From Macrostomum lignano (Eukaryota), in assembly GCA_002269645.1 (NCBI GenBank), contig NIVC01000374.1, forward strand, positions 124,001-188,000: a stretch of DNA of 64,000 nt, given 5' to 3'. Positions within the stretch are counted from its first letter, which is position 1, and the number at the start of each line of letters is the position of its first letter. Made by a program: the position numbers and the translations under genes. Shown piece after piece: positions 49,380 through 64,000 of this stretch. The notes below the pieces were generated by a model. That model was not told the origin of the DNA, made no database searches, and saw nothing but the letters and a program-made list of their open reading frames with translations.

Positions 49380-49776
49380 GTTAGTTAGTTAGTTAGTTAG
49401 TCAGTTAGTTAGTTAGTTAGTTAGTTAGTTAGTTAGTTAGTTAGTTAGTTAGTTAGTTAGTTAGTTAGTTAGTTAGTTAGTTAGTTAGTTAGTTAGTTAG
49501 TTAGTTAGTTAGTTAGTTAGTTAGTTAGTTAGTTAGTTAGTTAGTTAGTTAGTTAGTTAGTTAGTTAGTTAGTTAGTTAGTTAGTTAGTTAGTTAGTTAG
49601 TTAGTTAGTTAGTTAGTTAGTTAGTTAGTTAGTTAGTTAGTTAGTTAGTTAGTTAGTTAGTTAGTTAGTTAGTTAGTTAGTTAGTTAGTTAGTTAGTTAG
49701 TTAGTTAGTTAGTTAGTTAGTTAGTTAGTTAGTTAGTTAGTTAGTTAGTTAGTTAGTTAGTTAGTTAGTTAGTTAG
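49380..49776 (+). repeat. (TTAG)n array at left junction of duplication
   Basis: About 100 copies. Confidence 0.97.
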
Positions 49777-50263
49777 ATTGAATTAGTCTCAAAGAAATAA
49801 TGATGATATTAAAACTGACAGCCAGAAAGCCGCCTATTTAATCGCAGTCAGTCCATTTAGCGGACAGAGCCAGGAAACGCCCTTCTAGGGGAAGCGCGGG
49901 AGACAGCCAGTCTGCCCTTATCTTTCCAGATCTCCTAAATATTCCCATTATGAACTGTTCTTGCATGCAGTTACAGGGATTAAAAAGGATGAGATAACGT
50001 GTCCGTCTCGCTCATGGCCAACGCCCAATAGCGCATATGGCTTCAGCAGGATTGGCCCTAACCCCGAGCTGTGGAAAAGCCACTAATACTAGATTACTCT
50101 CGTGACTACAGTTGTGAGCAGCTTAGCCGACTAAAGTACTCGACTCTGAATGCTTGAAATGGGGGGGGGGGTTCACCATAAATATATTGTTAAACTATAG
50201 ATGTGTACTTTAGGCGCAGTGAAGTAGACAGCAAGAGTGCATGGACCTGCATGTTGCGGCTTT

Positions 50264-50560
50264 TTAAAAGAAATTCGTTCCCCAGTAGGGCTCGCGGTTC
50301 CTGCACGGGTTGTCTGCTTTTTTGGTAGGTTTAGCTGCCTTTGCGGACACTGAATTCACACTGACACGCTGTACACGCCTGTACACCTGGGGTTCCGCAA
50401 ACTCCGAAACGTCTCTCTCCGGCTGTTTGGTTCCTTCAAACTTCACAATCTGTAGCAACTGCTCAAGGTTTGTGTCTTTTCTCACAGTTCCTTTCTCTCT
50501 CTTCTATCTCTCTTCACTCCTCTAATCATCTATCTGCTTTGTTGTCCTGTAGGAGAGAGA
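50264..50560 (-). mobile_element. Possible degenerate retrotransposon gag fragment (also at 57251-57547)
   Basis: With one frameshift reads MIRGVKRDR..RKEL/RKDTNLEQLLQIVK...KKADNPCRN(R), resembling Gypsy gag C-terminal helix plus start of a zinc knuckle. Pattern recognition only. Confidence 0.4.
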
Positions 50561-59700: not shown

Positions 59701-62700
59701 CTGTCTGTCTGTCTTTCTCAGTCTTGTCTGTCTGTCTGTCTGTCTGTCTTTCTCAGTCTTGTCTGTCTGTCTGTCTGTCTGTCTGTCTGTCTGTCTGTCT
59801 TTCTCAGTCTTGTCTGTCTGTCTGTCTGTCTGTCTGTCTGTCTGTCTGTCTTTCTCAGTCTTGTCTGTCTGTCTGTCTGTCTGTCTTTCTCAGTCTTGTC
59901 TGTCTGTCTGTCAATCGATAACCCATATCCAGACCAGACAAGGGGCCCTGAGCAGGCGGTCCATCTAACCGGAAAATGATGCCGGGCATCCTCATCGACT
60001 CGGTGCAGAATTTCGCCAATTCTCTCTTAGCCAAACGATCAGCAAGCGCACTTAGTTTGCAAGCGGGATGATGAAGATTGCACAGAGTGCTCTGACTGCG
60101 GAGTTTATAGATCAATAATTCAGTCAACTAAGGATTGTGTTTTATTAAATAATAATAAAAAGTTTTACAACAAGCCAGAGCGCGATGACGCTTCTCGGAG
60201 TTAGCCGCGGCTACTCAGATGTGTTGTTACAAAGTACCATGACCCGACCTACGGCAACGCTGGGGGGGGGGAGGCTGCAAGTGGTTTGTCTTTTGTTTTA
60301 AAAACTTAAATAACGCACATTCCTGCTCTGCATGCAGATTTTAGATTGTCTGTCTGACAACTCCAGGCCATGGAGCACATCGGGTACACAGCATCCGGGC
60401 TGGGGAGATGAGAATAATTCAGAAAAAATGAGATCTATAAATTCTTTGTTTCTTTTCTATGAAAATGATGGCAGTCTACCAGCGGCTGATATCCTACTTA
60501 CCAAATCTCCATTACTCTCTTCACTCTCTCTCTCTCTCTCTCTCTCTCTCTCTCCTCTCTTCCTCTCCCCTCTCTTCCTCTCCCCTCTCTTCCTCTCCCC
60601 TCTCTTCCTCTCCCCTCTTTCTCTCCCCTCTCTTCCTCTCCCCTCTCTTCCTCTCCCTTCTCTTCCTCTCCTCTCTTTCTCTCCTCTCTCCCTCTCTCCT
60701 GTCTTCCTCTGCCCTCTCTCCCTCTCTCCCTATAGAGCCCCATCACAATGAGCAATCCTGACTCTGCTCCAGTCTGAATTGCAGCCAAAATTTTACAGAA
60801 TAAAACTGTCTATTTCGCTATAAAACTGTCAGCTGTTCTGTTTATAAAACAAAAGTTTCTACACATCAAATGGTTTCCAATCCAAGTTGGTAATTTTCAA
60901 ACATCACGGCCCGCCCAATAAAATGTGTGATGCTGTCTTTTGTACTTGGGGCACTTGGATAGAAGAGACAGACAGTCACACTGTTATGAACATTGCCAGA
61001 TGCTTTGCACAGAAGAATATAATACTGTAGGGTGAATGCCGTGCGTTCAAGACGAAACCCCGCTGGCACTCGTGAGAAAATATCTACCAAAGATTTAGAT
61101 ACTTAACATAATAAGCAGGTGAAAGCCGCATCAGCAAGGCTGAATTCCGACTTAAGCTACAATTCTTAAAGCATATCTCGCTACAGAACATCTACTATTG
61201 GTAAGTTCTGCAGTTCTGTGGCTACTTGGTATTAACTCATACTGCCTTGAAGTGTTGATTACTTCTGAATGAAACACATTATTCATTTGGAGGGGCTGTT
61301 GGTAAACGAAAATTGGGTCCAAACCTCGCGGCACAGGGAATCTACCTTCTTGACGAGTTGAAAGTCAAAGGTCCGCTGTACACCGCCATGTAGCTTCTTG
61401 ATCCCATCCTGCCACTCAATAATCCCACCGCACTCTGTGAAACATTTCAGTTTCAATTGAGCTTTAGTCTTCTGGGCAGATCCAAAGCCAAGCAGCAGCA
61501 ACAGCAACTTCAAGGAACTCAAAAGATGACGGAGCCAAGTCCAGCTCAAACAGGAGGGGAGAGTTCCACTCCTGCTGCCTGCACTTTTCGGCTGACATTT
61601 CTGGGCAAACAGGCGTTAAACCGGCCAACCAACAATACGGGATTCGGATCGGTGCAGAAGCCGCTAAGGGATATTTACCTGGCTGCCGGTTTGCAGACTG
61701 GCAAAGAGCCGAAAACTGATCGAGCAGCCGAGAGGACTTTTGTGTTTGACGGGTGAGCAGTAAACTGATGAATATTGAATTATATCCTATCGATTAGCAC
61801 CGAAATCCGATTGACGATCATTGGGGAATCCCTTAGATCATTGGGGAATCCCGTAGATCATTGGGGAATCCCGTAGATCATTGGGGAATCCCGTAGATCA
61901 TTGGGGAATCCCGTAGATCATTGGGGAATCCCTTAGATCATTGGGAAATCCCGTAGATCATTGGGGAATTCCGTAGATCATTGGGGAATCCCGTAGATCA
62001 TTGGGGATACCCGTAGATCATTGGGGATTCCCGTAGATCAATGGGAAATTCCGTAGATCATAGGGAAATCTCGTAGATCATAGGGAAATCTCGTAGATCA
62101 TTGGGGAATTCCTTAAATCATTGGGGAATCCCGTAGATCATTGGGGAATCCCGTAGATCATTGGGGAATCCCGTAGATCATTGGGGAATCCCGTAGATCA
62201 TAGGGGAATCCCGTAGATCGATGGGGAATCCTGTAGATCATTAGGGAATCCCGTAGATCATTGAGGAATCATTGATGTCATTGGGGAATCCCTGATGTCG
62301 TCTGGGAATATGGTAGAGCATTGTATAGAATCCTTGATGGCGAATAACTAGCCGACTGAGAAGCTTATTTTCTTCTTCCACCTTTCCAGCAACGCGATGC
62401 AGATCAGATTCTGGGACGCTACGGCCCGCCGCTTCCAGCAGGAGTCCTGGCCGCTGGACTGCGTCACCTATCTCGACCTGGTCCTGTTCCAGACTGTCAA
62501 AGGTCGGAAGCGTCATTTCGGCTACTTTCGTCGGCACACCGATCCGACAGACGTTGTCCCGGACGCGGTGCTCATCCCGCTGCACAAACGCGACGTCAAA
62601 AACTTGGCAAAGAGCTCGCGAAGTAACCGACCCATTCTCTGCTTTCTGGTGCGCCGGCCCTACGGCATCCAGTTTCTGGAGTGCCACGCCTATCAGGTTG

Positions 62701-63356
62701 AGGACGAGGCCACCGGCAGGCAGTTTATCGATCAGTTCGACCGCTGCTCGGCCGACAAGGCGCGCACCGAGCACCGGTCCGAGCGGAAGCCGCTGTTCAA
62801 CTACGCTCCGTGGCAGCCGGCCGAGGACAGGGCGGGTAGGAGCGCCGACGCAGCGGATGGAAACCTTGCCAGCATCAGCAAGTGGGCATCTCAGCCGGCT
62901 TTGGCACCCTCACCGTCTGCTACTGCTGCTGCTCCTAGAAGAGACCTGTCTGCTCAGAAGCAGCAGCAGCAGGAGCAGCAACCAGAAGATCGACGGTACA
63001 AATCTTCTGGCAATCTCGGCATCTCCTTGATGCCTGCAACCGACGGCTCCTTTGTAGTTGTTGACTCGTTGCTAATGACAACAACATCAACAGCGGACAC
63101 GACAAGTCAGCAGAGCTCTTCTCCTTCATCTTCTGTCTCATCAGCATCAGCTGTTCAGCGTCATCATCAGCAGCAGCAGGCGTCTCTTTCTTCTGGCGCG
63201 ATCCAGCGCTCCGCCTCTGGTACGATTTTTGAAAAGTACAAAGAACTTCAGGCTTTCAACATACCCGAGTGCGAGTACATGGGCTTCCAGGAGATGCAGC
63301 AGCAGCTGGAGAACAGACGGCAGCAACGTTTGACTCAGCAGCAGCAGTCACCACAG
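56763..63356 (+). repeat. Copy 2 of ~7.0 kb tandem segmental duplication
   Basis: See copy 1. Differences I found: one substitution (A49828/G56814), G11 vs G12 run, and microsatellite length changes. Confidence 0.95.
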
Positions 63357-64000
63357 GTTAGTTAGTTAGTTAGTTAGTTAGTTAGTTAGTTAGTTAGTTA
63401 GTTAGTTAGTTAGTTAGTTAGTTAGTTAGTTAGTTAGTTAGTTAGTTAGTTAGTTAGTTAGTTAGTTAGTTAGTTAGTTAGTTAGTTAGTTAGTTAGTTA
63501 GTTAGTTAGTTTGTTAGTTAGTTAAGTACTTACTTAGTTACTAATTTCTCTTTCAACACTGCAGCAGAGTCAGCCAAAGCAACAGCAAGTGCCTTCTTCT
63601 CTCAGTGCCAGCTCGAAATACCCCTCGGATAGCAACCTTGCGAGGTCGCGTCAGCAGCAGCAGCAGCAGCAGCAGCAGACCCCGACTCCACCATCGCAGC
63701 AGTCGCATCACGTTATCCAGCGAAGGACGCGAGCTCCAACCTTGCAGCAGCAGGTTGAGCAGCAACGACCCTCGACCATAATCGAGGAGTCGCAACTGCG
63801 GGATTCCCAGTTACCGGAACAGCGGCATCCACCACCACCACAACAGCAGCAACAACAGCAACAACAACAACAACAACAACAACAACAACAACAACAACAA
63901 CAACAACAACAACAACAACAACAACAACAACAAGACTCCACCGAGTCTCCAAGCGTAGCGAGTTTAGTCAACCGTTTTGAAAAGATCCAGAAACCGTTGC
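61526..64000 (+). CDS. Putative PTB/PH-fold adaptor with Ser/Gln-rich polyQ tail, 3' partial. Exons 61480/61526-61752, 62390-63356, 63565->64000
   Basis: GT-AG introns with phases 2 and 0. Domain pattern CTFRLTFLGKQ...GFGSVQKPLRDIY...ILCFLVRRPYGIQFLECHAYQVEDEATGRQFIDQF resembles PTB beta1/alpha1 and the C-terminal 'CHAF' strand-helix. Exon 3 (tandem CAGCAG acceptor, 63565 or 63568) reads QSQPKQQQV...Q~31...SVASLVNRFEK. The start codon is uncertain because the frame is open to the acceptor at 61480. Confidence 0.75.
63357..63524 (+). repeat. (TTAG)n array filling intron 2 of PTB-like gene
   Basis: Begins at the donor GT. Confidence 0.97.
63841..63933 (+). repeat. (CAA/CAG)n coding polyglutamine, about 31 Q
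   Basis: In frame with exon starting 63565. Confidence 0.9.

Follow-up and report, generated by a model that had tools for sequence, protein, structure and literature searches.

A 64,000-nt stretch of the genome of the flatworm Macrostomum lignano (contig NIVC01000374.1, positions 124,001 to 188,000, forward strand; hereafter the window) carries the front half of a gene twice, in two near-identical units that lie between three arrays of the tetranucleotide TTAG. The gene is predicted to encode an adaptor protein with a PTB domain. Judging from the sequence, we consider it likely that the duplication is real, and the best explanation of the locus as a whole is probably a real, very young direct tandem duplication that arose by misaligned exchange between two of the arrays. 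An earlier sequence-only reading had described near-identical units of ~7.0 kb bracketed by three TTAG arrays, and both repeat detection with Tandem Repeats Finder (TRF) and alignment confirm this layout.

The junction between the two copies is a hybrid array

Given that the units meet in an array, we compared the three arrays and their flanks, taking array coordinates from TRF and their uniqueness from a regular-expression scan of the window. The TTAG-type arrays in the 64 kb are three only, all on the same strand, and they range from 184 to 408 bp in length. Array A (49380-49776, + strand) has 99 units, (GTTA)5 GTCA (GTTA)93 G, and lies ~4.7 kb upstream of the ATG of copy 1. Array B (56355-56762, +), the junction between the copies, is a continuous array of 408 bp with no scaffold gap; it has 102 units, (GTTA)47 (GTCA)2 (GTTA)9 GTT (GTTA)43 G. 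Array C (63357-63540, +) has 46 units, (GTTA)38 GTTT (GTTA)3 followed by the degenerate tail AGTA CTTA CTTA GTTA, and then runs into CTAATTTCTCTTTCAACACTGCAG.

The flanks show that array B joins the surroundings of the other two. Its left flank is the left flank of array C, ...CAGTCACCACAG/GTTAG, which is the exon 2 donor of the gene and may also be given as ...CACCACAG/GTTAG. Its right flank, ATTGAATTAGTCTC..., is that of array A and begins ATTGAATTAG. No relationship links the sequence left of A with that right of C, or either of them with the unit, and homology between the units stops exactly at the same-motif arrays. Flank comparison thus verifies the earlier claim that the middle array takes its 5' flank from the third array and its 3' flank from the first.

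The internal structure of array B points the same way. The GTCA variant occurs, besides B, in A only, and in B it is placed to the right of a pure, C-like run; this order, a C-like run and then an A-type GTCA, is as expected for a hybrid with C on its left and A on its right. Array A would then be the proximal and array C the distal parental microsatellite. Variants private to array B are an additional GTCA and a deletion of 1 nt, and its run lengths differ from those of both A and C.

Two 6.6-kb units differ by a single substitution

Unit 1 (49777-56354, +; 6578 nt) and unit 2 (56763-63356, +; 6594 nt) lie head-to-tail, and BLAST and global alignment both show that they are the same sequence, spaced 6987-7004 nt apart from start to start. 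The global alignment contains 8 differences in all. The sole substitution, A49828 versus G56814, falls 52 nt past the right-hand end of array A in unit 1 and of array B in unit 2, giving an identity by substitution of 99.98%; it is the 1 substitution in the 3976 bases of non-array sequence compared. The 7 indels all fall in homopolymers or microsatellites: G-homopolymers differ in length at two places (50161/57147 and 53259/60262), a CT run differs at 53520, and four of the seven, of 2-8 nt, lie within a 1.9-kb (CTGT)n array (51019-52909, +; twin at 58006-59912). The pattern of variant units along this (CTGT)n array is almost alike in both copies. Chance cannot account for near-identity over 6.6 kb. 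The sequence-only reading had noticed the A/G substitution and one homopolymer difference; full alignment recovers both and lengthens the list, with additions of the same character.

The window contains no Ns, and neither a further copy of the unit nor any other large dispersed repeat was found within it. We also considered that an older, decayed third copy might lie left of array A and rejected this, since a sensitive BLAST search of 47200-49379 against the unit and its right flank gave no match.

The upstream copy lacks exon 3

Both units contain the same upstream region and exons 1 and 2 of the gene. Unit 2, the intact copy, is continuous with exon 3 and in phase with it in its native context; from unit 1 exon 3 is missing, which leaves that copy truncated on the 3' side. 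The coding sequence of exon 1 (227 nt) occupies 54524-54750 (+) in copy 1, with the ATG at 54524, and 61526-61752 (+) in copy 2, with the ATG at 61526 and the donor at 61753; the two are identical. Upstream of it, copy 1 has an AG, with its last base at 54477, that may be an acceptor or a trans-splice site, and copy 2 has a possible acceptor AG before 61480. Most of intron 1 consists of a 20-nt minisatellite (54814-55307, + in copy 1; twin at 61816-62309). Exon 2 (967 nt) spans 55388-56354 (+) in copy 1 and 62390-63356 (+) in copy 2, again identical, with a phase 2 acceptor and an open reading frame of 322 aa. Intron 2 (63357-63564, +; 208 nt) is almost entirely array C, and exon 3 (63565-64000, +), which is present once, encodes a glutamine-rich tail whose frame has no stop in the 145 codons before the window ends. 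The product of exons 1-3 is 543+ aa long where it reaches the window end.

Exons 1 and 2 together have 1194 nt, or 398 codons, so the exon 2 donor (CAG/GTTAGT) is in phase 0. These data uphold what the sequence-only reading had said of copy 1, namely that it has exons 1-2 with a phase-0 donor and no exon 3; exon 3 follows copy 2 only, and the copy 1 donor has no exon 3 acceptor within the next 7.2 kb. The predicted consequences for splicing hold as well. A splice from the copy 1 donor to 63565 would give the same protein, since the exons are identical between the copies. The AG sites at 61480 and 62390 are both phase 2, and splicing to either would shift the frame and lead to a stop, after 79 codons from 61480 and after 78 codons from 62390. 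Retention of the intron after copy 1 exon 2 would yield a protein ending in ...SPQVS and a stop codon. Because the exon 2 copies are identical, an RNA-seq junction 56354 to 63565 is indistinguishable from 63356 to 63565.

The splice sites are supported to different degrees. The exon 1/2 splice is backed by the structure model and the homologue alignments described below, which run smoothly across the junction. Of the two copy 2 acceptors proposed earlier, the one at 62390 stands on this homology and structure model; the other, 61480, is a bare AG with a weak pyrimidine tract, which may be a spliced-leader (SL) trans-splice site or no splice site. In M. lignano, SL trans-splicing affects 38.8% of genes, and polycistronic precursors account for ~7% of transcripts (PMC5730564). 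The junction between exons 2 and 3 is predicted from its GT..AG borders, the in-phase open frame, the length of the homologues, and the protein model A0A1I8JMM3, which contains exon 3 in shifted frames.

Two further peculiarities lie within 63357-63567, at the borders of intron 2. The array itself supplies, as its opening bases, the GT of the donor (GTTAGT, where the T at +3 departs from the consensus), and the acceptor is a tandem CAG/CAG (NAGNAG) that could add or drop one glutamine.

The duplicated exons encode a complete predicted PTB fold

The protein encoded by exons 1-3 has no Pfam match. An exhaustive HMMER search returned 27 relatives, most of them 550-770 aa long with the homologous region at the N-terminus; from their length and the position of this domain, more coding sequence is expected downstream. 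The named relatives are spiralian (oyster, tubeworm, cuttlefish) and are labelled 'PID domain-containing' or uncharacterised, among them the oyster 'PID domain-containing protein' A0A8W8K1R6. Pfam PID_2 (PF14719) is touched by 4 of 22 family members and reaches the cut-off in one.

Structure prediction assigns the fold more clearly. A single-sequence AlphaFold model had a predicted local distance difference test score (pLDDT) of 38 and was replaced by an AlphaFold2 model built on an alignment of 22 sequences, with pLDDT 84.7. When the PDB was searched with Foldseek, the top 50 matches were all PTB domains, including EPS8, tensin-2, GULP1, CCM2, and Numb, with a best E-value of 5.6e-5; the model thus has the PTB architecture, a pleckstrin-homology-like beta sandwich with a C-terminal helix as its cap. 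A sequence profile search of the PDB gave only a marginal match to the ARH PTB domain (E = 0.2). The gene is thus predicted to encode an unnamed spiralian PTB/PID-domain adaptor whose complete PTB fold, residues 19-206, lies within exons 1-2. It resembles the PTB/PID adaptors Numb, Dab, GULP, CCM2, EPS8, and tensin in that the predicted fold of these residues matches solved PTB domains and its remote homologues touch PF14719; unlike these named adaptors, it has no Pfam match, has a long glutamine/serine-rich tail, and belongs to a family without a name. The earlier description of the duplicated part as the front half of a gene is a fair one, since exons 1-2 hold the whole PTB fold and the start of the glutamine/serine-rich tail.

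M. lignano proteins in UniProt match the exon 1-2 protein exactly wherever the old models are not frameshifted; A0A1I8FPB1 (our protein P0001), for example, agrees at every residue through exon 1 and into the beginning of exon 2. Exact-protein look-ups with P0001 and with the 322-aa open reading frame of exon 2, made to obtain independent DNA of the locus, matched no contigs. These older models (A0A1I8FPB1, A0A1I8FC14, and A0A1I8JMM3) are full of frameshifts, and their automatic names, gelsolin-like, FERM, and myotubularin phosphatase, are unrelated to the gene. A0A1I8FC14 (P0002) differs at a few residues, such as AVLVPLHK instead of AVLIPLHK, and probably represents a homeologous copy.

A proposed misaligned exchange between two microsatellites

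The arrangement suggests an ancestral locus of the form L-(GTTA)n-U-(GTTA)m-exon 3, where L is the left flank and U the unit. One array would have stood ~4.7 kb upstream of the PTB-adaptor gene, and the second, on the same strand, would have made up nearly all of intron 2. A misaligned exchange between the two would have duplicated the intervening DNA and left a hybrid array at the junction. Unequal crossing-over, with a sister chromatid or a homologue as the partner, is one possible form of this exchange; others are a template switch at a replication fork and break-induced replication (BIR) primed in the microsatellite. The result is a truncated copy of 398 codons upstream and an untouched full gene downstream, with the same 4.7 kb of upstream sequence. 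Because both breakpoints lie in the region's only two pre-existing TTAG arrays, in the same orientation, it is very probable that the arrays served as the substrate. The sequence-only reading had proposed unequal crossing-over; exchange between arrays is supported as the simplest origin, and the sequence cannot tell crossing-over from template switching of the MMIR/BIR kind (MMIR, microhomology/microsatellite-induced replication).

Both classes of mechanism have precedents. Alu-mediated KMT2A-PTD and the Bar duplication in Drosophila are examples of non-allelic homologous recombination (NAHR). Like tandem duplications of this class, the M. lignano locus has direct repeats at both original boundaries, head-to-tail copies, and a hybrid repeat at the junction, and like the partial gene duplications among them it has one intronic breakpoint and a partial gene copy beside an intact one. 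It is unlike them in its substrate, where a pure tetranucleotide microsatellite (0.2-0.4 kb) takes the place of a transposon or low-copy repeat, and in its junction array, which does not combine the parental arrays cleanly and in register. In yeast, microsatellites at the junctions of segmental duplications act through a replication-based pathway, MMIR (Payen et al. 2008, PMC2518615). The yeast duplications formed by MMIR/BIR likewise have junctions in microsatellite or low-complexity tracts and include tandem duplications with chimeric or partial genes (PMC2518615). Those events were experimentally selected, span tens to hundreds of kb, and are Pol32-dependent, and MMIR is further defined by its independence from Rad52 (PMC2518615); here, in contrast, the genome is that of an animal and the end product alone is seen.

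We also considered capture of the unit by a mobile element of the Helitron type. This was rejected: the other open reading frames of the unit have no Pfam match, the window holds no other copy, and copy 2 is native. The unit contains no Rfam family either.

Real duplication or assembly artefact

The sequence-only reading had regarded an assembly artefact as an explanation equally serious as duplication. We now judge it less likely, on account of the missing gap, the short arrays, the private variants of array B, the low divergence of the copies, and the older protein model A0A1I8JMM3 (P0004). Segments of this model map in the following order: the 3' half of exon 2 at 55855-56352, a segment of the unit at 57592 (830 nt into the unit), exon 1 from 61451, exon 2 at 62389-63349, and exon 3 at 63653-64000. 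Given this order, the contig from which the model derives must carry the same tandem junction. Its accession series presumably belongs to the older ML2 assembly. A join of homeologues or paralogues is excluded by divergence: the subgenomes of M. lignano differ by 1.39-1.58% (PMC10733133), and at 1.39% ~55 substitutions are predicted in the 3976 non-array bases, compared with the 1 observed.

Several observations weigh against a real duplication made in this way. A single in-register exchange between today's arrays A and C cannot yield array B: on the left, its run of 47 units already reaches the most that C (42) and A (5) could supply together, and on the right it falls ~41 units short of A. 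Later slippage, a nearly end-to-start join, or consensus noise must be assumed to explain its structure. All 7 indels between the units resemble long-read consensus errors, and one locus assembled twice would show the same. The Mlig_3_7 assembly is said to hold errors and 180 Mb of redundant blocks (PMC10733133, PMC5730564), and it reused the PacBio reads of ML2 (PMC5730564); if the window comes from Mlig_3_7, the two assemblies would be independent in software only. The sequenced line, DV1, is aneuploid, and the DNA came from a pool of worms (PMC10733133, PMC5730564). DV1 is also inbred, with allelic heterozygosity near zero (PMC10733133), so two DV1 alleles would look as alike as these units do. 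At the level of the gene, a protein search found no database protein joining the exon 2 tail to exon 3 at E <= 0.01, and both this exon junction and the 61480 AG are sequence predictions.

An artefact of this kind would mean that the genome has one copy, L-A-U-C-exon 3, and that the same locus, or two near-identical DV1 alleles, were placed twice and looped through the TTAG tract. We think this unlikely. It would account for differences that are nearly confined to homopolymer and microsatellite indels, the usual signature of long-read consensus noise, and near-zero heterozygosity is compatible with such similarity; published assemblies of this species are redundant and error-prone, and tandem arrays make up 49% of the window. 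In-contig artefacts at tandem repeats are, however, more often collapses than expansions. Long reads greatly exceed the arrays (184-408 bp) in length and therefore span them, and by our reasoning a false loop would still need reads that carry the hybrid junction. Nor is array B a paste of A and C, because it has private variants and different run lengths, an internal structure of its own; and the model attributed to ML2 requires the same order of segments. False duplications are typically marked by gaps between the copies and by half depth (PMC9516828). The locus resembles the false duplications described by Ko et al. 2022 (PMC9516828) in that adjacent copies are near-identical and give the appearance of an additional partial gene, and in that the genome is polyploid, rich in repeats, and put together from noisy long reads; unlike them, it has no gap, its junction has variants of its own, and the gene model of a second assembly needs the same order. 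Since 7-kb units are easily collapsed, the copy number could even be above two.

Two other readings accept the junction as real and differ on what it represents. The duplication might be older and kept identical by gene conversion, or might have arisen independently of homology with the arrays incidental to it, which seems very unlikely. Tandem copies can be homogenised by conversion, and the left run of array B (47 units, the 42 regular units of C plus the first 5 of A) fits an end-to-start join without overlap. But the arrays that contain the two breakpoints agree in motif and orientation, with no TTAG arrays elsewhere in the 64 kb, a coincidence that is hard to credit, and the nearly shared variant pattern of the (CTGT)n array argues for a recent origin rather than repeated conversion. 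Alternatively, the junction might exist without a chromosomal duplication, on an excised circle carrying U and the hybrid array or as a somatic or minority variant, and have been threaded into the contig. Excision by exchange between A and C as direct repeats gives exactly the topology of junction B, and the DNA came from pooled animals. This reading is nonetheless the hardest to believe of those considered, as the A/G difference implies two versions of the unit, each with a different left neighbour, and reads from a circle could have found their way into the consensus of two assemblies only if they were abundant.

The genomic surroundings

M. lignano is a neopolyploid flatworm with a genome reported to be very rich in repeats and difficult to assemble (PMC10733133, PMC5730564), and the window reflects this. 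Its tandem arrays number ~40, with periods of 4-48 nt and lengths up to 2.1 kb, and nearly every motif is distinct. Many of them fill introns or intergenic spacers, and several genes have array-filled introns. In a multi-exon gene at 12537-24258 (+), each intron holds a different minisatellite of 0.3-2.1 kb; fragments of its open reading frames have no Pfam match. At 34740-39503 (+), a single open reading frame of 1587 aa encodes acidic repeats of the PEAN/PTEQ/PAEK type (Pfam PT repeat, E = 3.5e-46), and the DNA that codes for them is made up of 12-48 nt tandem arrays.

The window contains a second pair of direct arrays with the same motif, the 31-33-mer GAGCCAATTGGCATCTCAGCAACTCCCCATT, at 14437-14751 and 23418-23651, 9 kb apart. 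Their flanks are unrelated and nothing between them is duplicated; they are another potential substrate for exchange, and their presence shows that such pairs are not rare here. A Ty3/gypsy-type long terminal repeat (LTR) retroelement lies at 3965-7789, split over three reading frames that encode a zinc knuckle and aspartic protease (4171-5160), reverse transcriptase and RNase H (5015-6766), and integrase (6827-7789).

Implications

The intact downstream gene would be expected to work as before. Transcripts of copy 1 could meet one of three fates: use of a cryptic poly(A) site, giving a PTB-only protein that ends in ...SPQVS; splicing over 7.2 kb to exon 3, giving a normal mRNA; or splicing to the exons of copy 2, giving a frameshift. 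Should the 61480 AG serve for spliced-leader trans-splicing, RNA that reads through would be cleaved at this point in the manner of a polycistron.

Beyond this locus, pairs of same-motif arrays might be systematic substrates for duplications and deletions on the kb scale, and copy 1 might be a stand-alone PTB protein (398 aa plus VS and a stop) or the first cistron of an operon-like trans-spliced unit. We regard this broader proposal as doubtful and put it forward as speculation. Were it true, such array pairs would remodel genes exon by exon and add to the known redundancy and instability of the genome, and copy 1 would be a gene fragment caught at its birth.

The locus involves no new mechanism; duplications mediated by repeats and microsatellites are well documented, and such an event is unsurprising in the M. 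lignano genome. In practice, anyone who knocks out this gene, silences it by RNA interference, or counts its expression must reckon with exons 1-2 being present twice in identical form, and the locus is a compact case on which assemblies of this difficult genome can be validated. If the duplication is real, it is a clean and very young case in which two unrelated microsatellites of the same motif, one of them itself an intron, served as the substrate for recombination or template switching in an animal germ line. The partial copy, with a complete protein domain and its own upstream region, would then be raw material for a new gene, seen before decay.

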